Origin: Klebsormidium nitens
Lineage: Eukaryota; Plantae; Klebsormidiophyceae
Assembly (NCBI GenBank): GCA_000708835.1
Contig: DF236992.1
Span: forward strand, 142,513-206,512
DNA: 64,000 bases
Direction of reading: 5' to 3'
Shown: positions 1,304-49,838 of the stretch, piece after piece
Numbering within the stretch: the first letter of the stretch is position 1
Layout: each line of letters starts with the position of its first letter
Notes under the pieces: generated by a model
Database searches by the model: none
What the model saw: the letters and a program-made list of their open reading frames with translations, nothing else
What the model was told of the DNA's origin: nothing
Program-made: the position numbers and the translations under genes

Positions 1304-2524
1304 TCATATTCTTTGCTTCTCGAGATCGCGCAGGATCGTTCTGGGACTCCAGAATGCAAACTCTTCCGCAAAGACGCTCTCGGTTGGGGAAGCGGTGCCC
1401 GGTTGCCATTTCCGCGGCCGCGGCGAGTTGAACGTCATACTGACAGAAGCACTCGGTAAGAACAGCGCGGGCGGCTCGAATGTCGTTCGGTTTGCAGAAG
1501 GTCTGGGGGAGGTTGGCGAGCTCGCCTCTCGAAGGACAGCTGGAATCAGAAACTCTCTCTTTCTGACCGTTGGAGATTGGCAATCTGACCTTTTCGCGGG
1601 GGCTCTGGGAGGACTTGGCGAGATTGGCTGTCGAGAGAAAGCTGGGGTCTGGAATCCACTATTTTCGACCGCGGGAGACTCCAGGGAGCGTCGTGAGACG
1701 GTATCGATGTGAGAAAACGGAGATATCTCAGACGGCCTTGGGTACGTCAGCGTCCTCCTGTGAAGTTTCTCTTCCCCCGTCGGTTCGGCAGGCACTTCTC
1801 TGAGCGAGAGGTCTCCCGGGGTGATCTTCCGGTCAGAATCCCAGGAGCAAGTTTCTCTTGGCTTTACTGTCGAGTCGTGGCTGCAAGGGCGGCGGGCTAG
1901 CACTGGGGACGAGGGCTGAATCAGAGGAACGGTGGCCCTCCGTCGAGTCAGAGGAGACCTTTCGACCTTGCTGCGAGGGGCAGGCGGGCAGGGCAGGCCG
2001 TGAAAACAGGGCCCTTCGAAGGTGATGGCCGGAACCTCTGAGCAGTTTTTCGTTGACCGAGGGCTTCTTCTGGGGGTGGTTGGAGAGACAGGAAGTGACT
2101 CTGGAGGACCTTCATGCTGACCAGAAGAAGCGCCGCCAACAGCATTTCGCTTTGTTCCAGGCGTTGAATTCTTGGTCTGACCTCTTGGAAAGGGCCGCGT
2201 GACGAGATCTGGGACCAGGAACTCTGCAGAGCTTCTGAAAGAAGATGCTGCGGCTGCATCCTGGGAACATGACCGTCTCGTGAACTTCTGCTCTGAAAGA
2301 CTCCCTGGATAAGTTCTTGAAAGCGGAAGGTCGAACGGTACGTCTGGCACCCGCAGGGGCATGGGACTTAGAAACTGCACGCCCTGCTCTTCGAAGGGCA
2401 GGCTCGGAACCTCAATCGTCAGACAGAGCATCTTGCTTTCCTTCTTTCTCTTTGAGGTGTCTTGAGAGAGTGCCTCTGACAGGATGGATCTTGAGAAGAC
2501 CAGAGCGTCACCATGGGGAGACAA
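1304..2524 (-). CDS. Large terminal exon of an unknown Ser/Pro/Arg-rich, probably disordered protein; upstream exons unresolved
   Basis: 1221-nt stop-free frame ending in TGA at 1304. A candidate acceptor (ctgcagcag) lies near 2545. No domain recognised. Exon-like segments upstream (about 2913-3086 and 3500-3610) contain in-frame stops, so I could not complete the model. Confidence 0.45.
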   Translation of the reverse strand: MSPHGDALVFSRSILSEALSQDTSKRKKESKMLCLTIEVPSLPFEEQGVQFLSPMPLRVPDVPFDLPLSRTYPGSLSEQKFTRRSCSQDAAAASSFRSSAEFLVPDLVTRPFPRGQTKNSTPGTKRNAVGGASSGQHEGPPESLPVSPTTPRRSPRSTKNCSEVPAITFEGPCFHGLPCPPAPRSKVERSPLTRRRATVPLIQPSSPVLARRPCSHDSTVKPRETCSWDSDRKITPGDLSLREVPAEPTGEEKLHRRTLTYPRPSEISPFSHIDTVSRRSLESPAVENSGFQTPAFSRQPISPSPPRAPAKRSDCQSPTVRKREFLIPAVLREASSPTSPRPSANRTTFEPPALFLPSASVSMTFNSPRPRKWQPGTASPTESVFAEEFAFWSPRTILRDLEKQRI

Positions 2525-5202
2525 GCGCCTGATAAGGCATCTGCTGCAGCCAGAAACGAGATGAATATGAAACGTCTGAAGACACTTCTAGGCTAATCTG
2601 CTTCAGATTATGCACCTTTTCATGAAGACACCACAAGCATGTGTCACATGTTTGCTAAGCTGCTACTGATTCTGCTCCTCTTTTTGCGAAACCCCATTCG
2701 AACATTGGCATGAACTGCATAGGTCTGCAGAATGAACCGCTTTCCCAACAAAAGCACTTCACCATCTCTCTATGAACCTCTTATTGCAGATGCGGAGATC
2801 CTATCGAGCAAGCGGCTGTGGATACATGGTGATGAGTTTTGCTTAAAGTGCACGCCAGCTCGCCAGTGATCACAAACACCCCTCTTCGCTGCAATTCAAG
2901 GTAGCAAAGCTTACCCCTCTCTAGTAAAACCTTGAAACTCCTCCCTCAGGACAGTGTCTCCTCTTAGAGTCTCCACCCTAATCCTTCATTGAGGACAGCT
3001 TCCCAGACCTGAAGAATGCGGAAACGCAGATCATGCACATGTAGCTCTTCTGCAATGAGGACTTGCAAGGCCTTGCGCAACTCAACCTGAACATCTGCAT
3101 GTCTATCAAAAGGTGCGCAAGCGAGGTGCAAGGGCTCAGGCCCTCACTACACCTGCCACCGATCACAACCAATCCTGCCAATGATCGCCAAGCTCTGCAA
3201 GCCTCGCAGCATACGCATGCGCAAAACCAAGAATGCTTTTCTGCTCTAGAAAGCGTCCTAAGCGCACGTCAAGCTCCCTAGGCGCGCTTCTCTAAGACTA
3301 TCTGCTAAGCTCTGCGCGCAGAGGATGCGCACCTTGCGTCAGTGCTCCTCCAAAAGCAGACCTTAGCGCTTTGCGGAGTTGTCTTTCTCGCTTTTTGGGG
3401 CGTCTTTGCGCTTTCGCATGTGCTCTTTTCCGGCCTGGCTGCAGTCGCCACACATTCTGGCGCCTCTTCAGATGAGATGCGCCGTCACCACAAGATCATG
3501 CGGCTAGCCTTTGTTCACGCAGATCGTGTGGAGGTCACTCAAAGGATCATTAAAGTCTCGCTTCGCTGGCGTTCCCTCTCGTCTGCCACGGTGATGATCT
3601 GGCACGTGACCTAGTCCACGTGTCCAGAAGTATGTGGCGCTTCTTCGGTTTGAGCTTCTTGGAACAAACATGCCTAACGTCAGGACCATGACGCCACCCT
3701 TCGGACAATAAGCTCTGACCGACACAATTACACGGATTGCGAGCTGTGGTCTTATGATGGTCTCTGGATCCGTTCTGCTGATGTAGAGCCTTTAAATTGT
3801 TTGCATGTCTCGTCAAAGCTCAACGCCGTATCGAGCAAGTTCACCGGAGGTTTTCAGGCCACGCAGAAGTTTCGCAGGATAACTGACGTGTAATCCAGAT
3901 GCTTTACCAGTGGCTTATGACGCTTGCAGCTGTCCACAAGGAATACAGCTGTCTGATTGGCATCTTCGCGCGATCCTACGACTTGAAAACGCAGAGCTTC
4001 GTTTCTCATTCACAACCGAAGCTATGTATACCACACACCGTCGAGCCGACTGACACGGTATGAGAGGTTCTTTGAAGACGGGTTCAATACAGTGAAAGAA
4101 TACAGCTCGAAAGGCCCATTTTTTAGTACCAAGGTTGGGAGACAGCTGACGTAGGTGAAGGCAATAGTACTCGACTTAGGTTGTATCCGTAATCTTTGGC
4201 CTAGCTATAAGTACGTACTATTGTAGATCAAATTCTTTGCAAACCCCTGAAGCATGCATTTGCGCAGCAGTGGCGGCGCTTCAATCAAGACCTTCCCGAC
4301 ATGGAGGACGTGTAGTGCACCTGATCGAAACAATTGGCTCCTATCTCGAAATTTTTTATCCTTGGCCCGCTTATAAACTGGAATCATGCAATCATTGTGG
4401 CCTAAACGTCGTGAAACGTACGTGCGTGCTACATGATCTTGCCCTACCTGGCCACTGCGCATGCCAGTGCCTTGCCAGGACGGCCACGTACATGCTTTCG
4501 TGACGAGCTAGCGATTATATCATCGTATTCCAGCTCTGAAAAGTGAGCAGCATGATTTGCAAGGAGCCTGAACTCGGATGCCCATATATACGGGTCATAC
4601 CTCGGGCCTTCATATTTTGCGTAGAAGCAAGTCACCGGCACGGTCGATCGATGGGTTAGGCTAACAAGTCGCATGGTGCATGTGTTCTACGATGGACTTT
4701 GCAGCGGGTGTGCAAGAGCTCTGACCCTTAGACGAGTCTTGTTCAGCCTCACAATAATGCATTAGGGTGTGCTATGAGATTTTAATAAGGGCGTACGACC
4801 ATGGGTATATGTCAACTAGTGCGCGCTGCACCGGGCCGCGGTTACCTTGCACATGTATTGGACTACATGCATTCCTCCCGGAACGGATTCTGAACGGAGT
4901 ATGTCTGTACCCTTTCGAACCCTGCCACGTTTTCAGTCCCACTACATCAAAAGATCTGAGGGGCGGAAAAGTGCAGACACGAACCGAAGATATTCTTGGA
5001 GACAGATGTGTTGCTCGACTTAATACCACGGCAAATACCTTCCCTTGCAGTAGCTGCGCAGAAACTCAAGATATGACCTAGAAAAAGTCTCCTCATCCCA
5101 TTGACAGCCCGAGGTCTTTGACGTCACTTCCTGTAATCTACAACTGTGTGGCAACAGTGAAACTTGCAACCGACGACCCGCGCAATGCCCAACGCGTGCA
5201 AC

Positions 5203-7180
5203 TTAGAAGTCCACCTCGATGCCCTCTGGCGGGTCGAACTTGGAGCCCAGCTCGCTCAGCTTCTTGTGGCTGACCGCGTAGTCTGCGAAGAAGGCGTCCT
5301 GGCTCTCACGGTACTTCTCGGCGTACTTGGCGAACTCAGGATCCTTGAAGATGACCTGGTCGGTCGAGAAGGAGATGAGCTCGGGGTCGTGCTTCTCGGC
5401 AGGGTCCACCCAACCGTTGGCCACGTCCTTGGTCACCTGCACAAAAGTGACGTCGTCTTCGTCAGCCAAACATGCGGTGGGTGCAAAACGTCTCAATGAC
5501 GCTTTTGTTTCAAACGTCCAAGGCCCCAAGGAACAAGCGAACAGGATGTCGAACTGTAAGACGAGTGTGACTGTAGGCAATAGCTGAAAAAGTTGCCTGC
5601 AACTCTCTCTTGTTTTGATCAAAGCGAGCAGAATCACTGTATCGACCGACTCATTTCACCGTTTGCCTCTGCCTTGTCAAGCAACTCTCCAAGGACATCT
5701 CGTCCAGCCGACGTGTTGGCAAGACCTGTGCTGCCGAGCGTGTAGAGGATAGAAAGAAGCTCTGCTTTACGTGAATCAGCCTGACTGCAACCGTACCTGG
5801 TAGTAGCTGTTGTTGAACACGAGCCAATCCGGCACCCAGCTGGACCCGCCCGGAGTTCCAATGTCGCCCCCCTCGGTGTACTTGGTCTTGTCAGCCCCGA
5901 AACCGCTCCGGTCGTTGTGAGACCTCCCAATGGTGTGGGCGCCTGCAAACGTAGCGGAAGGTCAGCCGTGAGCATAGCCGACCTGACTAAATTGTCAACA
6001 ACATGGCGTATCGAACAATTAATCACGCTAGCGGATCCTGCGCCAGAGATTTTGTGGCCTGCGTAGCTGTGCCGGTCCATGCCGGAAAAGCGAAAGACAA
6101 GTCCGTCAGAAATTCTTCGGTTTGGTTAATTCGAATCACCAATGCTGAGTCTCAATAAACAAATCTGCTGAGGACAAGGCAATGCTGCTTGTAGGTTAAA
6201 AGGCGAGGTGTTCAGTCCAGACAGTCTCAGGCTTTGAACGCAACCGCAGTCGAGCAAACAACCAGTCACCAAAGGCTGTCGTTGCCGCACCTGACAGGGC
6301 GACGATGTCCTGGTCGGTGAGGCCCATCCTGTAGAAGATGCGGCGCAGATGCTCGCCCGCACTCTCTTTCGAGGCAAGTCCGCCGCCGGCCTTGGCCGTG
6401 CCGGGGACAGCCGCGGGCAGGTTGCCCTCGGGGGAGCAATGCTCAGGAGTATCCACGTCCACACGGCCGAACCTGGTCAACAGAACAAACTGCATCTTTG
6501 AACGTTTCGCTAGCAATTCCCGTATATCCAAAGTTTATCAAGCTATCGAAAGCTGAACATCCAGACATTCGTGATCGGCTGAACATTGTGTCAGCAGTCT
6601 AGAACCGATTCGACGCAGTCTAAAAACAATGAGGCAGCAATGTAACATCAATCAGGGGGCGTGAATAGATTGGTCAGGTCAGACCGGCTGCAATATAGCA
6701 CCCAGCGATACAGCACCCTCAACTTAAGTTGAGTCAATTTGCATCAACCTTGTCCTCGTTCGCTCTCACCCCGGCACCCGAATGAAATCGATAACGGGGT
6801 CGCAAAAGATGCATTTCAAGCATCCCACCATCACACTCTTGCGCAAGCTTGAGAACAGTCACTTACCGGAGGGGCAGCTTGGGCCCGCCCGCCTCCTGAA
6901 TTCCGATCTTGCTGGCCAGCTGGAAGAGGTCGGCGTAGCTGATGGACGGGTACCTCTGCTTGATGGGCTCCAGCAGCGCCAGCGCCTGGTCCAAACCGGC
7001 GTTTGCCCCATGGAGAAGCTCCGGCTTGAAACGAATGCTCCCGACGGCGCCTCCGGCCTTGGGCCACTCGGATGCCGAGATGTTCTTGTCGTACGTGCCC
7101 GAGTCATGCCAGCCGATGCGAACGCAGATGGGGTTGGCGTGGGTGCTGTGGAAGAGCTGCTTCAGGGCCTCAGCGGCACC
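5203..7180 (-). CDS. APX: Ascorbate peroxidase module (class I heme peroxidase, chloroplast/stromal-type signature)
   Basis: Distal motif [12 protein letters not shown]; [13 protein letters not shown]; ANAGL; [10 protein letters not shown]; FGRVD; proximal His in ALSGAHTIGR; [14 protein letters not shown]; TD..IFKDPEF..YAEKY; C-terminus [14 protein letters not shown]. Confidence 0.95.
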
Positions 7181-9468
7181 CTGCGGGCAAGGACGACCAC
7201 TTTGTAAGCAAGCGCGCTCTTCCGAATGGCTCGACACAAGCATGCTTCGGATCTTGGAGGATGTCAAAGTGGAATGGATGTTTCACAAAGCCAACACACA
7301 ATCGCCTGCAACATCCGAGCATCTCAACCAGTGTGTTCTTCTAAATCCGGCGCCCTTTTGTTCCTTCAGTCACGAAAGTACTACCTTGCTCTGCCCGACT
7401 TCTGTACGAGCCGGTCATAATCTGCTAGAGCGAAAGCAATAAGCACCACCTGCAAAGTGAGCCAAGTTCGTCTTTGTCAAGTCAGTCATATCGCAACTTT
7501 CATATCTTCTGTGCAACTATCATGCTGCAAAACTGCAAATCGACCTTCTTTCCCGTACCTTGAGCTGTGCGGTGTACTCCTCAACGTTCCGGGCAGACTC
7601 CGTGCCAGTAATCTTGAGCCAGGAAGGGCGCGTCGAGATGCGCTCCCACCAGGCCTTCAGGTGCGCCCTCCTAAGGAAGCCCGCTCCAGCATCGGTCTTG
7701 AGCAGCAAGGCGGTGTAGGGGAGGTGGCTGAGGTCAGCGAGCGTGAACTCGTCTCCAGCGAGGTACTGGTTCTTGGCCAGGTGGTCCTCGTACACGTCCA
7801 GAACCTGTCAGGATGAGTAACTGGAGGAACTCAGCGACGCCCAGCCAAACACTTATTGCACTGTTCTAAGCTGCTGGGGGCCCGTTGACACTTGGTCTTC
7901 TACATGTCCCGCACCTGTTAATACCAGAAGCTTGCATAGAACACAGCTGATGAAACGCTGTAGAATCTTTGAGTGATACTTTCAAAGAATTCAGAAAGGA
8001 TTCTCGCATGACCATGCCCCGAGATCTGTAAGTTGCTCTATCAAGGCAGGCTGCTTGAGGGAATGAAAAGGGTATGGACATACGATCATACCAGTATCCA
8101 GAAACTTGCAGCCGATCCATTCCGCGTTTGTGAGCAACAAGATTGACAGATGCTCGTAAGTTGCAACTGACCATGCCTCGTTAGTCCCACTGCTCCAATG
8201 CCACGATGTCCACCACCCAAGCTGTGGACCAGGGTCTCAGCATTTTGAACAAAACCCTCTGGTGAACAAAGCACCTTACCTTCTCCAGCTTCTGGATCTG
8301 CTCCTCGACGACTTTCATGTCAGTCTGTCCTCCAAACATTGGTGCAAACACCACCTGGCCAACAATGGTGGCTACAGGGGGGTTGTAGTTTTGCCCCTCG
8401 ACCTCCAGCCATGTGTCGACAAGAGCACGCTGTTTCTCTGTCTTGCCGAAAAGATCGGTTCCCTGGCCGGCCCACTTGGTAGCAATATACCTCGCCATTG
8501 CACGAGACTCTGAAGAGAAGGGAAGGGAGAGTCTCATTTCAACAAATGGCTTTGTGGTGAACATAAACCAGGGCTCATGTATGGGGCTTTCACAAGCACA
8601 GCCAACCTAGGAGATGAATTCCTAGCTCAAGGGTGCAATGCAAAGAACCCGGCAGGTTCGACACCTTTTACCAGCAAAATGTACGCAGATTGAGAGAGGT
8701 GAAGGAGAACGGTGCAATTGACGGGGTCTCGATGAGAGGGTCCTTATCTGCTACACTGAGAATAAGCTGACAAAGAAGCTGCTGAAGGTACACTCCCCTT
8801 CAAGTGCTGATGAAGAGCTGCTTGTCATCACCTGCTTTTTGGTGGACTGCGATATAGACTTACGATAGTCTCTGCTATTGCCAGCACCATGAGGAGTGAG
8901 GTACCTCATACACATGTCAGAAGGTCCTTAGACTTACCGAACATTGTGAGATCCCCGTCCACCAATACAGGAACTTGTCCGAAAGGCTGCCAGAGAGGAA
9001 AGGGTCAACGTCAACAGCTATTCTGAGCATGAAGCCGAGCTTACCTCAGATTTGTGATGCAGCCCTATTACCATCTGCTCACATTTTGATTCAACTTTTG
9101 CGATTGAGAACACAATCAGCCATCACCTTGGGCAGGTTCTAAGCATCGGCTTACAACATACAGCATGTCCAAGATCTGTGCAATTCAGTTTGCTCAAAGC
9201 AGCTTGACACCAAGCAACATTCACACTCAAGTCAATCAACGCTGCTGGATGCACATGTAGCCAAAGCAGCAAATGACTTTTACGACGACCTGGCCGTAAA
9301 GTTCAGATCAGCACTCACCTGGAGTGCCAAAAACTCTGGCGCCTTATGCGCCCCCTTCATGAGATCTACCTCTACCAACTCAAAGTCCACATTCTTTTCC
9401 AGACAGGTTGTCATCACCCTCCTGGTGCAGGTACTGAGGCTCAACCCATGGATCTTCAGTGGCGCCAT
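5203..9468 (-). CDS. Predicted Phi-class glutathione S-transferase / ascorbate peroxidase fusion protein (8 exons, 516 aa)
   Basis: Exons 9468-9319, 8986-8938, 8509-8280, 7804-7559, 7180-6867, 6472-6291, 5942-5797, 5436-5203. All introns are GT-AG, phases are compatible, and the total of 1551 nt gives one open frame. The junction AAG|gtacgg...ttgcccgcag|GGT gives [18 protein letters not shown], which matches the first helix of chloroplast-type APXs (approx. PAQLKSAREDIKELL). Confidence 0.8.
7559..9468 (-). CDS. GSTF: Glutathione S-transferase, Phi class module
   Basis: [18 protein letters not shown] (STCT active-site motif); [18 protein letters not shown]; FESRAMARY; [11 protein letters not shown]; [16 protein letters not shown]; [11 protein letters not shown]. 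Exon layout (50 codons, 49 nt, rest) resembles plant GSTF genes. Confidence 0.95.
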
Positions 9469-11744
9469 CTTAACCTGCCGTCAGAAACAGGGGGAAGTTG
9501 AATGGGGCTGCTCTTGAGTTTTCCAGAAAGAGCTTGATCATCTGCTTGAGGGAGATCCTCCACCAGCAAATGCAGGAGCGTGTACAAAGGCACAAGATAA
9601 TACATCATCTGCGATAATCTCATCTGCTTAACACATCGATCCGACACAGATCAATCCAACAGCATGTTCTTTCCCAGTGGAAAACCTGTTGACTCTATGT
9701 AATAATCGCCTCACAGGTGTTGCCACTGACATTTACAGGTCGCTTTGCTGACTGTTGCATCTCAGATCTAAAGCTGGAGTCAAGTACACCGCGAAGCCCT
9801 CATGATCAGAACAAAACAACATTGCCAGGCTGCTCTAGTGTAAAAACTTTCGTCATCTTGTAGGTCAAAACCAGAAAGCGCAAGTACCAGAGGAATCAGC
9901 AGTAGAACCGCTGAGGCGGACGATGGGACGAGTTCACAAAAGCTCCCTCTTGGCTCAGACTCCCAGTGATCAAGCAAAGCATCATTGTCGCACAGCATCT
10001 CACCTCTCCTTGCACCACCTCCTTCCCACTTCACTTCGTCAAGCAACGAACGGCAGACAACCCTCGCGTGTGCTCGTAACTGATTTATCCAATGGCGGCT
10101 ACTCTAATGGAGGAGAGACCAATGGAAGCAGATAAAGTTTCTAACACAAGCTGGAGCACAGCATTGGCAACAGCCAGCTGCGTCTGGACGACCTCTCTCT
10201 CCTGTGCTACCGGTACAGCCTACAGGAGTAGCACGTAGGTAATCAAGACTCAAGACTACGTGACTGGTGAACCTGATTCGCATCCAAGATTCTAGGCGAC
10301 ATGGGCGGTTGGATCCACATTTTTGCTATCGGACGGCTTTGAAAAGCCTGCTAGAAACTTCGCTCACGTGGCCATCGGTGTACAACGTATTACCTAGTAC
10401 ACTGTAGTCTGTATGACGCCATTGAATCTAGCAATCAGGATACGGTAGGTACAGTCCGATAGACTCTAGAGTCCAGACGTCCTCCAGACTCCAAAGGTTA
10501 CCGGTAGGCTGTACAGTGTACATAGCCTGTTGAAGAGTGAAAGCTTCTGGAGTCAAGTTCAACTTCAATGCTCCAAAGGGAGAATAGGATTTTGAACAGT
10601 GCTCCTCATGCTAACAGATATTGGTCGGAAGGTAACAACCACTTGAATGGTTGGCGATTCCAAACAGAGAAGACAGTGGTTTGCTATGTTGATGTAAGCC
10701 CCAAAGCCCACCATCATACTTGAAACGATCGAAAACGACAGTTGAGGTGCCATGCTCCCATTCGTTTCTCCACAGTTGCATCTTTCAAGTGCCCCTCAAG
10801 TGCATTCTAACTTCATAGAGCTCCTGATGTACAAAAAGGCTTATGTCCAAAGTCACTTGAATCGAGCTTGAGTCCAGCATCCAACCGAGCGAGCACCTGG
10901 TACGCGGAAACGATCGGCCATACTACCGCATGCAACCCAACAAGGGAGGAAGGGAATATGGCAAGTGCATAGAATGGTGGCCACCAGGCTTTGATCCAAG
11001 CTTTCAGCTGCTCAAACCTAGAAATCACAACTATTGACATGCATATGGCGTGCCAACGCGAAATGCCTGTTTCCAGATCTTGACAGATCTTGACTGGAAA
11101 CATTATTCATCTCAAACGCAATGGAGCAAGTCCATTGGGGGTCCATTGGCCAAGTCATTGGTGCACATGGCTGTCAAGCGAAGGAGCCTGGGCGTCAATT
11201 CTTTATCCTATTTTCTTGGAAGGGGACATATCAACATATGGAACGGCTCACGCAATTGTAGCCGACTCTCAATCCAACCTTCCACCGCATGATTACTGTT
11301 GCGAATCTAGCCTTAGAGCTTTTCGACCCCGAATGGTGTGCATTGAGCCCCCCAAGTCGGAGGTCCATTCCTACAATCTGCAGTCATTACGAGAAGCAAC
11401 GAGTGCGCCCGCATTTCCAACGCTTTTTCGGGGAGCCCCTTCTGTTAGCTGGCGCACTTCCGCCCTTTCTCATGTGTAGCTTCGACACACTACTTAAAAC
11501 GTGACGACTCGTTGCTCATTCTATGTGAGCGCTCCCCCACCAGCACTTGCACAAAACCGGTGTCACTCTCTGCCCGGCCCTTTTGCATCTATGGACCGGG
11601 CGCCTAGACGCACCTTGCTCTGATGTTGTGATGTCACTGTACCTTGCGCTCGTCCAAACGATCACTCGGAGTCAACACCCGTTGAACGCTTCAGCGTGAT
11701 ATGACTTCCCATACCCATTGTTGAATAGTCTGAGATATTGGGCG

Positions 11745-12715
11745 CCATCGTTTTTCGCTTATGCCCCGCCTCCGCTTCTCAGCGTTGATCTTCCGCTGAA
11801 GAACGGGCCGGTCGGCGGGCTTGACAGTCGTTAGGAACCCGGCGAGAAGCTTCTACCGGTGCTTCCAGCCAGAGACAAACGAGGGACCACCGCGCCGAAA
11901 AGGACTTTGGGTTGAGTTGGACCCCTTTCTGAAAGTTTGCTCTAGGAGGCGTCCAGAACACTTCTGCACTCCAAAGGCTGTTGCATCCAAGAGAAGGTAC
12001 AGATACAGGCACGGTGTCCACACGTCTCGATCTTGGAAGAACGGGATCGTATATGAGAGCGCAAACCATTTTGCAGACCCGAATAAGTTCCGAAACAAAA
12101 AACCATTTGCATCCTGCTTGCTGATCTTAAGCATCGCCCCTGCAAACACGGATACGCATTGGAAATAACCTCCATCTCTCCATCATCGCATGGCTGCTGG
12201 CATTGCAATCCGTGACCCCTAATGAAGATTTTTACTGAAAGCCGTACCTCGACCGAAACGCCCTTGAATAGAAATCGAAATGACCGGAAAGTGTCTCGAA
12301 TCAGCTCACAAACATCTAAAAGCAAACAGCTTAGGAGCCAGTCTTTGCATCAGCAAGAACCCACCTGTTCAGGAGTTCGAACACGTTGGCCCGGTGTTTC
12401 ATTCCCCCTCACCTTACGCGTTCCGCTGTAGTGTATACCCCGCTCCTTTCAGGGGCCCAGCTTCTTCCGCCCCGTTTCCTTCCCTCAGCCGCTTCCTCCC
12501 CTCAGCTCTTGTCACCCGATTGATGGCCTAGATCGCTCATTCTGCCCGCATTATGATCGACCCCTGAGCGCTCCTTTTCCACCGCTGCCAGCGCCGACAG
12601 GCTGCCCTTCTTTTTCTCCACCGGTAGCGGGTTCCCAAATGGTCAGGCTTGTTGACCGCCAGAATCGCAAGGATGCCTCCTGGGGCGGGAATGGAGGCAG
12701 AAGCTGAAGGGCTGC
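11745..12715 (-). pseudogene. Inverted, degenerate partial copy of the RTEL1 3' region (exon 14, intron, start of exon 15)
   Basis: The reverse complement matches 48024-49410, e.g. [13 protein letters not shown] vs [13 protein letters not shown], and gtcaagcccgccgaccggcccgttcttcagcggaagatc vs gtcaagcccgccgaccggccccttcttcagcggaagatc. It has frameshifts, a TGG>TAG change, an internal deletion of about 410 bp and a retained intron. Confidence 0.85.
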
Positions 12716-14181
12716 ACACAACTCAGAATATCAACAGTCAAAACACCTTTTCTGAAATGAAAGTGCTTCTGCTAAAAGCAAGCGCCTATCATCACCCAGG
12801 GGCACAAGGGGCAGCAAATCATGCGCAATTGAAAGGCAGATCGTCAAACCTTTGGATGGTCTTCCAGTGTGGCCGGCTCGCTTCGTCAGGTTGAAACTTT
12901 GAAGAAGAAGCGCACGACCTACGCTTTGCTCTCATTATAGTAAAAGTGTGTGGGCAAACGGTCCGATGCAGCAATGACTGCTGACCTGCAAGATTGTTCT
13001 GACGGAGCAATTCGCTGCAAAAATTTTGTTACATTCAGAATAGTCAATCAAAGAAACAGCTTGGCAGAAAGGACGTACCCTAAACACCCTAGGGCATTGG
13101 GCTTCGCACACTATCTCGCACAAAGAAACCAAAGAAGTCTTCAATACCAAAAGGAGCAATTGCTGCCCACCAGTCTGACAACACCTCCGGTGGTGAAGCC
13201 CGCACTCCCCGCTAGCTTTTCAGAACTTATTGCAGCCGCAAGTGCGCGCCTCTGACCATTAGCCCTCTTCTCCAGTCCCCTTGTTACAGTATATTGGGGA
13301 AGCTTGCTCAACCGTATCTGATGACCGCGCCATAACGTTGTCGCCGGCAGTCCAACCTACTAGTAAAGCAGGTGGCCTCCACACAGGCATTGATGCGCCC
13401 TTGCTTGCCGAAGGGTCTCCGCTGGCAATTTCGTATCACCGCCACTACTGCGGCTCTGAAGCCTTCACATTTGTTTTCCACCTTTTCCGAAACTGCCCAC
13501 CGGAGCCTTTCACAGCAAACCCACCAACTCAACCCATTGGCCTGCATCCAGGTTGCCAACGCGCTGGTCATACACTGATGTTGCGCAAAGGAGTGGCCCC
13601 GGCTGAGTTTTCCCTTTTGCCGCCCTACGTCTCTGTAGATGCTTGGGAAATCTCAACGTCTTTCTGCAGAACAACAAACAGTGAGCAAGCACAGCGCAGC
13701 AAGGTCGTCGAAAACCTGCTTAATTCTACCCTTCTACTAAGCGCTGGACACCATGGCTGGCATGGGGCTGCCATGGCGCCTGCCCTCACCCTACTGCTCC
13801 ACCGAATGCTGTACACCGTGCATCATGCATGCAGCAAAACTTCAATAATAAATGCGCGGTCCTCGGAGGAAACCCGCGCGGCCGATCTTCATGTCAGCTT
13901 GAGACGGCACATCCACCGACACCGTTCTGAGTCAGGGCTAGGTACCTATTGAATTCTCCATACCGTACCGATCTCTATCAAGAAACGGCGAAAAGAGCCG
14001 GCCGGCTTTTTCAATTCAAGGTGCGCTAAGCTAGCAATTCAGGCTGTTGCAATGATCGCGCAAGGAGCTGTGGGTACGCGAATCGAAGGAGGCGCTTTGG
14101 CACCAAGCAAGCAAGCAGCAAGCAAAGGAGCACCACCTGGCGCCAGTAGGTTGCCAGGTTGCGGCCATTAGTCTTGCCGCC

Positions 14182-43300: not shown

Positions 43301-46300
43301 CTTCACAACCGAGGACTCCATGCTCGGCCCGGGGCAAACTCCCGGGGGGTCCAGCAGCTCGTACCGGGTGCACATTCACGAGGGGGGCGGGCCCCCCGGG
43401 CGCGCCAACCGGGCGGTCGGGGGATCCCCCCAGCGGACGCTGAGCTACTGGTGCTTCGACCCGGGGACGTGCTTCCGGGAGTTTGCGCGACTGGGCGTGC
43501 GCAGCGTGGTGGTGACGAGCGGAACGCTCGCGCCGCTCGAGAGCTTTGCGCACGAGCTCAAGCTGCCGTTCCAGGTGCGGACTTCGTTTCTGAATTCAGA
43601 GGGGCTCCAATGCTGTCACGTAACAAATTTCATAAGACGCGAAGTCTCGTTGGGCGGGTGACTTTCTAGTAAGGCAAGCTTCGAACTGAAGCTTTGCGGA
43701 AAGGAGAAGCGAATTGGACGGAGGGTCCGTATTTGCCGGCAAGATAGGACCGTCCCAGAGCAGATGCTTTCTCGTGGATGGGGTCGGAACAAAAAATCGG
43801 CATTCCGCTTACCACCCGATCGAGCGATAAGCGGAGAGCTGTGCCAACTAGCTTGCCAACCTGAGAGTATTAAAGAGCTCTTCATAAAGGATTAGCGACG
43901 TATATAGTAACTTTTCCGGCATCCCAGACCCTCAACTCTCTTCTCTCTAGGTGGGTCTTAGTCGAGCTTGAACTTTTGTGCTCCTGACGCGTCAAAGAAG
44001 TCAAAGCAGTGTTTGTCTCCGAATCCCTGGCCGCGTCCATCCATCCTATAGTTCCAAAGCTCGATATGATTATTGTTATGTTAGGGTCGGAACAGGGAGT
44101 GAGACTGCAACGCCTAACCTCCTGTTCTCCTCCCGGCAGGTCCGGTTGGAGAACCCCCACGTGATTCAACCGACCTTATGTTCACTAATCTTCACGGACC
44201 TCCGGCTAAAAACACAGCCGAAAACAAATCATGCATTCTGAGCAACCCATCTCAGTCGCCTAGGGCAGGCCTCTCCAGACCGTAAACCCTGGACCCAATC
44301 TCAAAAGCCTGAAGTTGTTTCTCTCCGTGTAGATCCGGTTGGAGAATCCCCACGTGATCCAGCCCCGGCAGGTGTGGGCGGGGGTCGTCCCCGTGGGGCC
44401 GTCGGGGAAGGCGCTCAACTCGTCGTACCGCACGCGCGACTCGCCCGAGTACAAGTCGGAGCTGGGGAACGCCATTGGTGAGGGGTGGAGTTCTGTAGAA
44501 TCTGCCAAACCCGATCGCAGAGATTCAAACAACGAATTGCAAATCTCTTACGCAGGGGTCATAGCACAAACAGAGCGTTTTGGTTTACTTGTTCAAAGTG
44601 TGCGATGGCAAGGTTACTGTTACGGACTTGAAACGCGTTTGTAAGACCCCGCTCTTGACAGCCGGTGGCAACTCCGGACCCGTTCAAAGCCGCTTCCTGG
44701 CAGTGACATCTCAGCGCAGTGTATTGGGGCTCACCGTCTTCCTTATAGTCGACGCATCAAAGCAGTCCTGTCTCTTCACAATGACGCCACTTTTCATCTT
44801 GAAGTCTGCGGTCAGTGTGTCCTGAGGGCTCGTTATGTGACCATCCATTGGTCAAGTCTAATCTGAACGAGGATTAACTTGACCTGCAGTCAGCTTTAGA
44901 GTCAACTTTGCATTCCATCCCCTTTCAGAAGCCTAACCGGGCTCTTAACCCGTCTTTTTCGCAGTCAACTTTGCGCGCATCGTCCCGAACGGCCTGCTCG
45001 TCTTCTTCCCGTCGTACCACCTGCTGACGTCATGCCTCGAGTTCTGGCAGACGCCCGCGCCCGGCGCGGCCACCACCATCTGGGAGCGCATCACGCGCCA
45101 CAAGCAGCCCGTCGTCGAGCCGCGGGAGGCTGCGCTCTTTAACCAGGTCGGTTAAGATGGACCCGTCAACCAACCCAGTTTTGCTGCCTCTTAGCCTTTT
45201 GCTTTACTCACCACAAGCAGCCCGTCGTGAAGCCGCGCGAGGCCGCGCTTTTCAACCAGGTGGGTCAAGATTGACCCGTTAGCTGACTCAGGTGTGCAGC
45301 CTTTTAGTCTTTTGTATTATGCGCCACAAGCAGCCAGTCGCAGAGCCGCGCGACGCCGCGCTCTCTGATAAGGTGGTCAAAGTCGACTCGTTATGCAACC
45401 CAACTTCTTCAGCCTTTCAGCATTTCCTTCAAGATAGATCGCAGAACGAAGCGCGCTCGACCTGGCGCAAGGCCACTGGAAGAAGCCAGGTATCTGATCT
45501 CGAAGCTTGACTATACCTCTGAGTTCAGATTGGTTGGAGTTCAGCTCCGCGAGTCCGCTCCTCAGCCAGGCCAGCTGTATACGGTTCCTTACTGGGCCTG
45601 ATCCGTCAATCTTGTTCCGTGATCATTTGTCCTCAAACTGCGCGGTGTTGGCTCTAACAACGGTACTTTTCAAACGAGATCTTCAGAGAAGGCCAGATAG
45701 GTGCCCCTTCAACAACGGAATCTCAGCTCCATTGACCCTTGGGATCTCCTGCGGGTCTACACCAAAACAAGGCAGCCGCCACAGAAGTATAACCAACCGC
45801 TTTCGAAAGGCCTTCGAGGCTCCCCGAACAGTCTCCTAACTTCGTGGCGGCCTATCCACGCACTCGTCCCGCATTGATCAGTCGCCGCGCCTCGTGATTC
45901 TCCCGCTTTGCAAGCAGGATTGGACTCATTTCTGATGGAATCGCTTGTTCCCCGCAGGCGAACGAGGATTTCTACGCGAAGCTGGAAGACAGCGCGGCCT
46001 CGGGGGCCGTGTTCTTTGCGGTGTGCCGGGGCAAGGTCAGCGAGGGGCTCGACTTCGCGGACAAGGCGGGGCGCGCCGTTATCATCACCGGGATGCCATA
46101 CGCTATGAAGCTGGACCCCAAGGTGGGCCTAGGTATTAGAAGCTCGATGTTCCTTGATCTTCGGATACCTGTGTCTTCCGAGGCTTTCGGATTCGGGCTT
46201 CAAAGCATTGCGGTATAGTGACCATTGCGGGGATGCCGTAAGCCATGGACTGGAAAGCTTGTCTGGATGGGCAGAGTGCTTGTCGTGAGCCCGCATCTGC

Positions 46301-49300
46301 TTGATCCGGTATCGTTGAGGCGCGCTGGAGGATGAGCCTCCAGAAGCATTTGTCCTGTCCCTGCTTTCAGAACACTGTTACAGCAAAGTCGTACGTTCCC
46401 TGCTGATCGTGTCTGGCAAGAGCAGTTTTTTGACGGTCACAAGTGGTAGTACTGCCGGACTGCTCTCCAACTAGCTTTCCTCACAGCTCCATCCGTCCTT
46501 TTTAGCTCAAATCCGATTCCGTTCCGCTCTATCTTTCTGCAGATCCGGCTGAAGATGGAGTTTCTGGATGACAACGCGCGCGCGCCCGGGGCGGCCTCCT
46601 CCGGGCAAAAGGCCCTGTCAGGCGACCAGTGGTACGTGCAGCTGGCCACCCGGGCGGTGAACCAGGCGGTCGGGAGAGTCATCCGCCACCGGAACGACTA
46701 CGGGGCCATCATTCTGTGTGACGAAAGGTGAGCCTTGTTTCAGTGTTTCAGTCGGATATGCAAAGGGAAGAGATCTGCTTCCTGTCTTGATCTTCGGAAG
46801 AGGTTGTTTGTATTGTTGCGATAACTTCACTCGCTTTGATTCCGAGCACGAGCAACTCCATTCCGTAATGTGTCCGTCCCTCCGCTTTAACTATTGTAGC
46901 AGATTTCAGAAAAAGAGGGCATTTTTGGCGCTCCGACTCTGCAAAAGAGAGCCAGATTACAAAAGCACGGCATCAAAACCTCTCGCAAAGCCTCCGTCTC
47001 CTGGTTTGTCTAGTTGTCTCGCTCACACGGCCGCTCGCCTCTCCGCAGGTTCGGCCAAAACAACATGCAAAACCAGCTGTCTCTTTGGCTGCGCCCTTAC
47101 CTGCGCCGCCACTCCAAGTTCGGCGAGGCCCTGTTCACGCTCACCCAGTTCTTCCGCGACCAGGCCGCGACTGCCGTCCCCGTGGCGCCCAGAGCGGAAA
47201 CGGGGCCTTCTTTCGGCGGCGCAAAAAAACGGCTCCGGTCGGAGGAAGAGGGGTTGGAGGTGGGACTGGAAGAAGGGGCGAATGGGCGGAGGGCCCGCCC
47301 TCACATCGAAATGAGCTTTGAAGAGTTGGCGGGGAATGCGGGGTTCACCAACGGAGGCGTGCCGGGGAGGTGGGCAGTACACCCGTTGGTCTCTTTGACC
47401 TTGAGACCTTGGTTCCTTTGACACGAGTTGATGCACAAGGCTCGATGTTGTTCGGGGCTTCGGTGGCCCATCCTGTCTTTCAGTCTGCTTTTTTGGATCG
47501 ACGGTTCGGCTTCTCGCGGATCGTTGCAGTCAGTTGCACGCTAACGGTTTCTCGCGGTGCAGCTTTAGTCTGTTGGTGTGGTCGAGCATTCCGTGTCGCT
47601 GGTCGCAATGAGAGGAAAGCATCGCTTGTGCGCTTCTCGATCCCTCTAGCTTTTCCTGTTGGAAGAGAGCCAGCCACAGCGGGAGACCATCCGAACGTTC
47701 GTGCCTGCCTTGTTCACCCCGCAATCAATGGTCTTGGGCCTTGGGAGTCGCTTGAAAGTAACCAGAACGGAACCGCTCAGAGAGCGTATTCTGGTGTTGA
47801 GCGATTCAAAGTCGATCCTGAATTACGGTAGTAGTAGTAAGCATGTGTGATGGTATTAACGAAGAGGAATCTCGTAAATAACCAGAACTGAGAATTTAAG
47901 CTCTGATTGACCTGCTAAACCCAATCGACCCTAATCCTTCTACTAATGCCACCCATTCCCGACGAGTTTCTTATCACTGACGGACCTTGTCCTGATCAGG
48001 GTTCGCTTCATGTATCTTCGCAGCCCCTCAGCCCCCGACTCTTCTTCCCGTCCCGGGGGCATCCTGGCGATCCTGGCGGCCAACAAGCCCGACCAACCGG
48101 GGGGCAGCTACCGGGCACTCAAGGAGCAGAAGAAGGGCAGCCTGTCGGCGCTGCTCGCGGCCAACCGGGCGCAGGCTGAGGTGCAGATCCCGCTTCCGGC
48201 TGGCGTCATGCTGAGCGAAGCAACCATCACTGCGGCCAACGCTGCGATCGGGAGCATGGCGGGGATTGTTAGAGCCGATAAGCGTGAGGGTGTGCGGGGT
48301 GTGAGTGGGGGTGCGAGTGCGGAGAAAGGGACTGATCTGGTGGTTGGAAGCGGGTCGGAAAAAGAGATTGGGTTAGTCGAGGCAAGTGGGTCGAAGGAGG
48401 AAAGGATAAGTAGCAGGAATCAGGGAGAAGCGAGAGGAGACGAGTTGAGAGACGGTGGACTGGGGCAGAGCGGTTCAGGAAGGAAGTCCGTTGCGTTGGA
48501 TCCGTCTTTAGGGACGACCGGAAGGCACGAATCTGGAAACACCGGCTCAATGCCAAGTTCTACAGCGGCGGAAAAGGAGCGCTCCGGGGTAGGGCGGAAC
48601 GCAAGCGGAAGGAGCGACCGGAACTATCAGTCGGGCGACAAAAGCCGAGGGGAGGAAGTGGCCGGGGGAGGCAACCGGGGCGGAGAGGCTGGAACGTCGC
48701 AAGGGGCGGAGCTTACGACAGCGCAGGATGCGCACACTAAGGAGATGAAGAAGCGGGCCAACGCCATGGAGTTCCTGAAGCAGGTGGGTATTCTCGCGGA
48801 GACCCGCTTCTAATGATGAGAGCGTGTGAGGGTTCTTGAAAACGTTTCTGGTCGTTTCAAATCTAATCCAGGGCGGTTTTCTGGTCGGGAGGATCTTTTT
48901 TTACTTAGCGATGCATTCCGGCGGAGATTCGTGTCTTTCATTTAGTAGGCGAATCTGAGAAAGGCTTTCCAGTCAACATTTCTCCAGCGAGTGCACCGCT
49001 TGACACGAGAACTGAAGTTCATCGCCAATGACGAGTGGCAGTTGCAAATGCTTTGTTGAAACCATCAGGCACTCTGATTTGCAACTTCGGTTGGTTTCGC
49101 AACCTACTCCGCCAGCTGCTCGACCCCGACACGTATTTCAAAAGCCATTACGGTTTAAAGCAGGACACCGGACCTTTCTTCTCCTTACAGGTCAAGTCCG
49201 AGTTGGACGCGGCTGACTTCGAAAGATTCCGAACCCTCCTAACGGACTTCAAAAAGGGTTCCACGTCAACCGAAACTTTACTCGACGGCGTGGTTCCCCT

Positions 49301-49838
49301 CTTTGCGGCCAAGCATCGGTGGAAGCTCCTTGCCGGTTTCGCGACCATTGTCAAGCCCGCCGACCGGCCCCTTCTTCAGCGGAAGATCGACGCCGAGAAG
49401 CGAAGGCGGGGGATGAGCGATGGAGCCCAAACGCCCGGGCCGTCCCAAAATGGGCCGAGGAGTCATAGTACGCAGCAGCGGTCGACAGGTGGCGGCGCGT
49501 CGTTTGGGCGATCGCAAGGTAACGAGTCACCGGCGGAAGGTGCATTCCAGCGCCCAACCGACGGATACTCGGCGCCCGGGCAGAGGGTGACGTCTTCGGC
49601 AGGTGGGAAAGCGCTCGCAAAGAGCGAGCCACGGAATAGTGTAGATAATGCAGCGGAGGTACAAATAGGGCGAAAGTGCGCCAGCTGTCAGAAGCGGCCC
49701 CCCGAGAAAGCTTTCAAAGCGGCGTGCGGCCACATTTGCTGCTACGCGTGTTGGCTGCGGATCGTGGAGAGAACCAAGATGTGTCCGACTTGTGGGGGCC
49801 GTGTGCACAAGGCGGCACTCGAAAAGCTGTACTTCTGA
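37355..49838 (+). CDS. RTEL1: Regulator of telomere elongation helicase 1 (Fe-S DEAH helicase with harmonin-N/PAH-like domain and C-terminal RING; 15 exons, about 1301 aa)
   Basis: Exons 37355-37456, 37822-37944, 38228-38430, 38901-39006, 39663-39932, 41111-41276, 42343-42494, 43197-43574, 44333-44477, 44965-45146, 45958-46122, 46543-46727, 47049-47369, 48024-48783, 49191-49838. Motifs [101 protein letters not shown]3HC4 RING. Confidence 0.95.
40520..41160 (+). repeat. Five tandem copies (135-161 bp spacing) of the RTEL1 intron 5/exon 6 acceptor junction
   Basis: gagggcatctgcgcggacgcggcgtcgttcgacctcccc-like units start at 40533, 40679, 40814, 40950 and 41111 (functional copy). Confidence 0.9.
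45095..45490 (+). repeat. Tandem decaying copies of the RTEL1 exon 10 donor junction
   Basis: ccacaagcagcccgtcgt...gccgcg...gcgct...aaccaggt occurs at about 45097 (functional), 45211 and 45324, with weaker copies near 45445-45490. Confidence 0.85.

Follow-up and report, generated by a model that had tools for sequence, protein, structure and literature searches.

In a 64,000-nucleotide stretch of the Klebsormidium nitens genome (GenBank assembly GCA_000708835.1, contig DF236992.1, positions 142,513 to 206,512 of the forward strand; called the window here, and the source of all coordinates unless stated otherwise), one gene on the minus strand encodes a Phi-class glutathione S-transferase (GST) that is continued in frame by a chloroplast-type ascorbate peroxidase (APX). 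This is a real, conserved and lineage-restricted fusion protein. The overall explanation, i.e. that K. nitens makes a two-domain GST-APX protein from a single gene, with the origin, location and activities proposed below, has in our estimate a probability of roughly 90%. The two enzyme families are well known; the gene is publicly annotated and, as far as can be told, has gone unnoticed as a fusion.

Gene structure and transcripts

The gene has eight coding exons between positions 9468 and 5203 (Table 1). Joined together they give a clean open reading frame (ORF) of 1551 nt for a protein of 516 amino acids (56.8 kDa), with the GST in residues 1 to about 208, a linker of 8 residues and the APX in residues from about 217 to 516. 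All introns between coding exons are of the GT..AG type and 332-475 nt long. A preliminary description, which was made from the sequence alone, had proposed this single 516-residue frame. It had also proposed that the last GST exon runs on to a donor AAG|gtacgg at 7559/7558, where an in-phase intron of 378 nt begins that ends with an acceptor at 7181/7180. Both proposals are borne out by the joining of the exons. The junction intron (7558-7181) ends in ttgcccgcag|GGT and is in phase 0 on both sides; in the protein the junction falls between K225 and G226, which is a trypsin site; the donor at the end of coding exon 4 has the same GTACGG as the one at 5797/5796.

The RNA evidence consists of Logan contigs from four RNA runs of four studies (X1, X5, X9 and X10), which were placed on positions 4700-10000. 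All seven coding joints occur in all four runs, and the 7559->7180 joint is covered with 245 nt on its shorter side; RNA across this junction was the check that the preliminary description had named. All eight exons, from the 5' leader into the 3' untranslated region (UTR), are found on one contig in X9 (record 15, 2158 nt) and in X10 (record 7, 2032 nt). One dominant mRNA from one gene encodes both domains.

The contigs extend 93-200 nt 5' of position 9476 in the four runs (183-200 nt in three of them), and the 30-nt consensus of this extension corresponds to approximately 10004-10033. The leader carries an in-frame TGA 12 codons 5' of the ATG, and therefore the protein starts at the GST fold's first strand, with MAPLK, and has no transit peptide.

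The public model of the gene, kfl00043_0220_v1.1, already joins both domains. It contains 24 extra residues at the N-terminus, begins MKHRANVFELLN and has its first exon at 12402-12367 on the minus strand, 2.4 kb upstream. This exon is spliced onto SGKEVVQGEVK-MAPLK. The RNA contigs of the four runs read contiguous genomic sequence at this place (..AGTGAAG|TGGG..) with an in-frame TGA. Because the RNA reads straight through the supposed acceptor, the 24-residue extension is unsupported in these data; it looks as if the annotated extension is either wrong or a minor isoform.

The mRNA could in principle be a conjoined read-through transcript of two neighbouring genes. The functional proteins would then be a GST that ends within or close to the junction intron and an independent APX with its own start. 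Some features would suit this explanation: read-through into the junction intron stops after 16 codons, an in-frame ATG lies inside the intron 21 codons upstream of exon 5, and the GST exons are somewhat deeper than the APX exons in X1 and X5. However, the depth in the intron bin 7355-7531 is zero in all four runs, and the low value in bin 7178-7354 is exactly accounted for by two exon bases at exon depth; no RNA covers the ATG. Faint pre-mRNA contigs are present in other introns (X1, X5) and none in the junction intron. The contigs of the four runs contain neither molecule ends nor loose ends at 7559 or 7180. Furthermore, the APX exons alone would lack N-terminal residues, since the intron falls within helix A; the mRNA contigs of an ortholog from a related alga contain the same splice; and the ortholog differs in the linker by an indel that keeps the frame, with purifying selection on both halves (see below). 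The read-through explanation is thus largely refuted and we consider it extremely improbable. The preliminary description had itself named a refuting pattern, in which junction reads are missing and GST and APX transcripts are separate; this pattern was not found in the four RNA runs. Its statement that the APX has no first exon or transit peptide of its own also stands, with the ATG in the intron as one correction.

The gene is listed as 'KnGSTF1' in the supplement of Casey & Dolan 2023 (PMC9937507), the text of which mentions neither ascorbate nor a fusion nor KnGSTF. A literature search, from which subscription journals were mostly absent, found no paper with the gene identifier and none on a GST-APX fusion; two papers on APX evolution that drew on the K. 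nitens proteome likewise gave nothing. Provisionally, the fusion appears never to have been described as such. The claim of the preliminary description that no GSTF-APX fusion had been described therefore holds for the literature found, but a fused model was already public under the name KnGSTF1 (PMC9937507). In published surveys of the GST family the gene was counted as 'a GST' and its APX half was not noticed.

Relatives of the two domains

Pfam detects GST_N (PF02798, 2.8e-15), GST_C (PF00043, 1.1e-15) and peroxidase (PF00141, 1.4e-41) domains in the fusion protein, a combination for which the preliminary description had suggested a domain search. Whole-length alignments to solved structures were made with the full-length ortholog (P0431), while the K. 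nitens protein was queried exon by exon. Coding exon 3 matches only Phi-class GSTs among the solved structures. Residues 1-212 of P0431 align to Phi GST structures from poplar, Arabidopsis and maize with E values of 1e-52 to 1e-73, and the solved Phi GSTs end where the linker of the fusion starts. The match to PtGSTF8 (5F07), AtGSTF9 (6EZY) and maize GST III (1AW9) is end-to-end over residues 1 to about 210. Like these proteins, the fusion has a Ser12 of the STxT type and the QVP and ES residues of the glutathione site. The residues present are S12-T-C14-T, H40-K41, Q54-V-P56 and E67-S68; the signature, the cis-Pro and ES are the same in P0431. The usual Phi signature is STxT with the Ser near position 12 (PMC6540824), and a Cys at the third signature position, as in the fusion, is found in PtGSTF8. 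Whereas Phi GSTs are stand-alone proteins of about 215 residues, the GST of the fusion continues in frame into a peroxidase to a total of 516 residues. Besides the fusion, two GSTFs of the ordinary kind are encoded in K. nitens (kfl00151_0140 and kfl00151_0280).

Dehydroascorbate reductase (DHAR) has the GST fold and glutathione binding in common with the GST half, and the pathway logic would be the same if the GST half reduces dehydroascorbate (DHA). DHAR is a Cys-GST, however, with its catalytic Cys in the position where the fusion has Ser12; the Cys of the fusion is two residues further on (C14). Judged by these sequence features the GST domain is of the Phi class and not a DHAR.

The best match of the APX half is the stromal APX of tobacco (1IYN), which aligns from residue 6 (AQLK...) to residue 273 (E = 3e-96 for the ortholog); cytosolic APXs match much less well. 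In this alignment 1IYN from residue 6 (AQLKSAREDIKEL) is opposite (T/K)QLKGAAE(A/S)LK(Q/E)L of the fusion. Because the alignment starts before the junction, helix A of the APX is split by the junction intron. This agrees with the earlier proposals that the helix is rebuilt across the junction (TAQLK|GAAEALKQL) and that the start of the APX domain is encoded in the GST exon, as the alignment covers both sides of the intron.

The APX residues R246, W249, H250, H394, the Arg of DRSGF, W426 and D465 are all present. The motifs VRIGWH (245-250), GAHTIG (391-396) and STDQ (463-466) align to 1IYN, and DRSGF (401-405) aligns with DRSGW of 1IYN, which contains the ascorbate-site Arg. We take this Arg to be the equivalent of Arg172 in the cytosolic APX of pea, an ascorbate-site residue by which APX differs from APX-R and APX-L. 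The catalytic residues of both the GST and the APX domain are intact. Chloroplast APXs (1IYN; plant sAPX/tAPX) are about 55-60% identical to the APX of the fusion and likewise have the distal Arg/Trp/His, the proximal His, the Asp and the ascorbate-site Arg; the chloroplast-type loop of 1IYN aligns with a loop that follows the proximal helix in the fusion. In contrast to plant chloroplast APX, the fusion has neither a transit peptide nor a thylakoid anchor, and it contains two inserts beyond the chloroplast APX (residues 354-366 and 440-449). The fusion protein also has no other membrane anchor and no type 1 peroxisomal targeting signal (PTS1). In a quick tree the APXs of the fusions sit by themselves on a long branch that is not part of the supported (96) clade of green chloroplast APXs; they join cryptophyte APXs at only 92 SH-aLRT.

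Conservation, distribution and origin

A profile of the K. nitens APX exons on a Chara APX scaffold (A2) retrieved the ortholog, P0297. It carries the JGI label 'glutathione S-transferase', yet it has GST and peroxidase Pfam matches; P0431, with 521 residues, is the full-length member of its cluster. These proteins are coded on intronless JGI contigs from two different samples (L001, 1698 nt; L002, 2073 nt). In two genomic metagenome contigs, L003 and L004, a single strand carries the pieces for GST_N, GST_C and peroxidase in succession. L002 aligns to them in nine blocks, the same as in the K. nitens gene, and the junction intron has a length of about 510-540 nt.

The ortholog is 81% identical to the K. 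nitens protein and has both APX inserts in common with it; its linker is 6 residues longer, the indel being in frame. It also begins, with MAPVK, downstream of an in-frame stop. Between K. nitens and the ortholog dN/dS is 0.13 for the GST, 0.16 for the APX and 0.32 for the linker, at a dS of 0.84. Judged by these ratios both halves are kept under purifying selection. The words of the ortholog mRNA were found in runs from five other organisms (0.69-0.87 of the sampled words) and in soil metatranscriptomes (0.27-0.87).

Searches for further fusions gave the following results. A library of 1.84 billion representatives contains no 100% match to APX exon 5 of K. nitens, and the K. nitens fusion protein is likewise absent from the matches listed in word-index searches. 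No other protein with GST and peroxidase is among the best 150 representatives for the APX exon, and P0297 is the only one to join them among the 120 matches listed in a word-index search with its own sequence. The ESM Atlas has no combined GST-peroxidase cluster, and a metagenome scan for the fusion gave only the L002 contig among the matches listed. The candidates L014 and L016-L019 were rejected as distant fusions; each proved to be an APX alone, preceded by a signal or transit peptide. Representatives of APXs with a long N-terminus were also rejected as GST fusions, as they have other architectures (Pyr_redox_2 type, cytochrome b5 or tandem APX). All these searches list top matches, and a rare fusion in a distant lineage could have escaped them.

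Several of these architectures are natural APX fusions in their own right. A protein of about 905 residues from Symbiodiniaceae combines Pyr_redox_2, Rubredoxin_C, BFD [2Fe-2S] and APX (P0059/P0449; Cladocopium goreaui CAL1132995.1); this dinoflagellate protein gives the impression of a reductase and a peroxidase paired within a single chain. Others are a cytochrome b5-APX (P0061) and tandem double APXs (P0293, P0115); P0048 and P0133 also belong to the natural APX fusions. The Symbiodiniaceae, cytochrome b5 and tandem fusions resemble the K. nitens protein in that an APX is on one chain with another redox module, but they have different partners, none of them a GST, and come from unrelated lineages. 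By analogy this suggests that APX fusions may be a recurring way to tie a peroxidase to an electron supply.

The segment VEEYTAQLK at the end of exon 4 is APX-derived: its QLK aligns with 1IYN, and the motif VEEY..QLKGA is common to the stand-alone algal APX P0375, which begins ..TKEYVQQLKGAKE. The in-frame join was therefore probably made in the DNA itself, within exon 4 and in the interval from ..SWLKI to VEEY. We propose that this exon originally coded for the N-terminus of the APX, and that the join would predate the split of K. nitens and the related soil Klebsormidium-like algae, both halves having stayed under purifying selection ever since. P0375/P0439, from JGI metatranscriptome contigs, is an algal APX without a transit peptide and with a C-terminal membrane anchor; by its N-terminal sequence it may be a relative of the parent APX.

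The junction intron may have been inherited from the APX gene or may have been acquired later. Chloroplast APX genes have a single exon in Marchantia polymorpha (L005, 1001-2311) and Chara braunii (L006, 1001-2131), and an intron at QLK|GA is absent from the chloroplast APX genes of Arabidopsis (L007, tAPX) and Selaginella (L008). The latter two have ten intron positions in common, of which only NSYFK|D matches an intron of the fusion, the one in front of coding exon 8 (NSYYQ|V, phase 0).

Predicted activities and genomic setting

Since the transit peptide is lost and there is no membrane anchor or PTS1, the protein is most likely cytosolic, and it would probably be dimeric via its GST domain. 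The APX half is expected to reduce H2O2 with ascorbate. The GST half would bind glutathione and give the same molecule a second activity that depends on it. This second activity would most probably be the reduction of organic hydroperoxides and/or thiol-transferase-type chemistry, which Cys14 would allow; in Phi isoforms, a signature Cys is reported to bring deglutathionylation in addition to conjugation and peroxidase activity (PMC6540824). The least certain step is that this thiol chemistry might regenerate ascorbate from DHA beside a chloroplast-type APX that is sensitive to ascorbate depletion. That ascorbate is regenerated by the GST half, or that the GST half shields the depletion-sensitive APX in some other way, is speculative and rather improbable. 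Also doubtful is a Rosetta stone interpretation, in which the Phi GST would be the glutathione-driven partner of APX and would reduce DHA or an oxidised product of the APX side, or clear organic hydroperoxides, in a short-circuited cytosolic ascorbate-glutathione cycle. It is plausible that the protein would couple the pools of glutathione and ascorbate. As possible forms of such a coupling the preliminary description had suggested a self-recycling peroxidase or substrate channelling.

The GST half may not be a second catalytic site at all. It could instead serve as a module for dimerisation or solubility, as a ligandin for the APX (binding e.g. haem, porphyrin or other small molecules) or as a replacement of the transit peptide that keeps the APX in the cytosol. 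Chloroplast APXs are monomeric, and the loss of the transit peptide is demonstrated; both facts are consistent with such a role. So are the findings that plant GSTF and GSTU proteins bind tetrapyrroles such as porphyrins and haem and often have non-catalytic roles, and that Ser-GSTs are homodimers (PMC6540824). On the other hand, the glutathione-site residues and the Ser/Cys signature are kept in both species, and the GST domain evolves under a dN/dS of 0.13; as strong constraint is expected for a binding module too, this value is also compatible with a non-catalytic GST. We regard the non-catalytic role as unlikely, but as an alternative with real weight.

Several points weigh against the proposed two-enzyme protein. 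The Logan contigs are short-read assemblies, so that full-length continuity rests on assembly, a concern which is offset by the recovery of the full ORF of the ortholog in two independent JGI contigs. Support for the fused protein stands at the level of transcript and sequence, and the activities predicted for the two domains rest on sequence. The signature STCT occurs often outside the fusion, in Phi-like GSTs that stand alone (KnGSTF2/3, Selaginella and bacterial relatives), and therefore did not arise as a response to being fused; at the catalytic position there is a Ser, where true DHARs have a Cys. An AlphaFold model of the ortholog has a confident GST half, a disordered linker (pLDDT < 50 in residues 211-221) and a poor APX half, with a pTM of 0.45; the APX half is poor because the alignment is shallow. 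Being confident for the GST half only, the model says nothing on the contact between the domains.

The disorder predicted for the linker, together with its faster evolution (dN/dS and indel given above), would also be in line with a fused precursor that is cut in the linker after translation and releases separate GST and APX in equal amounts. No protease motif was recognised in the linker, and natural two-enzyme fusions usually stay intact. We consider this cleavage very improbable and prefer the intact two-domain protein.

Phi GSTs are a streptophyte-wide family, which is best known for herbicide detoxification and whose natural roles are not well defined. In photosynthetic cells the central part in H2O2 scavenging is played by APX. 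The presence of a conserved and expressed fusion in a soil-living, drying-tolerant alga argues that GSTF and APX cooperate in this lineage at least, which stands at the base of the line to land plants, and it points to looking for such a cooperation in plants, where the proteins are separate. If the Rosetta stone interpretation were true, it would provide a physiological role for Phi GSTs, which is largely unclear in land plants.

Table 1. Features of the GST-APX gene in the window (aa, amino acid residues of the fusion protein).
Feature	Position	Strand	Evidence and remarks
5'UTR exon	10004..10200	-	RNA contigs; 3' end at 10004 exact, 5' end approximate
5'UTR intron, GT..AG	9475..10003	-	Contig loose end at 9476; donor GAGAG|gtgaga, acceptor ggcag|GTTAAG
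Coding exon 1: start ATG, GST_N, signature S12-T-C14-T	9319..9468	-	Joint 9319->8986 in 4 runs
Coding exon 2: GST_N, QVP (cis-Pro)	8938..8986	-	ORF and RNA contigs
Coding exon 3: FESRA of the glutathione site (G-site), start of GST_C	8280..8509	-	ORF, RNA contigs; best solved-structure matches are Phi-class GSTs
Coding exon 4: end of GST_C (..RPSWLKI), linker TGTESARN (aa 209-216), APX start VEEYTAQLK (aa 217-225)	7559..7804	-	ORF, structure alignment
Junction intron, 378 nt, phase 0, GT..AG	7181..7558	-	Joint in 4/4 runs, zero depth; same position in L003 and L004
Coding exon 5: APX helix A, distal R246/W249/H250	6867..7180	-	ORF, alignment to 1IYN
Coding exon 6: APX, lineage-specific insert aa 354-366	6291..6472	-	ORF, alignment
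Coding exon 7: proximal His394 (GAHTIG), Arg of DRSGF, chloroplast-type loop	5797..5942	-	ORF, alignment
Coding exon 8: insert (aa 440-449), Asp of STDQ, C-terminus ..GIEVDF, stop	5203..5436	-	ORF, alignment
3'UTR	4746..5202	-	RNA contigs reach 4746 (X1, X5), 4787 (X9) and 4917 (X10)

The surroundings of the gene differ in part between the species. In the related algae GST-APX is preceded on the same strand, at a distance of about 2 kb, by the 3' end of an RTEL1-like helicase gene (L003, 367-5417; L004, 682-5713). The matching helicase exons of K. nitens are at 45954-49838 on the plus strand, at a distance of about 37 kb, with their orientation relative to the fusion gene reversed, and only weak helicase-like fragments are found upstream of the fusion gene (11766-11916 and 12621-12716, minus strand). 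This difference in placement suggests that an inversion or rearrangement separates the species. Downstream of the fusion gene a conserved coding segment at 1886-2095 (minus strand) is syntenic with segments at 17842-18050 of L003 and 18272-18480 of L004.

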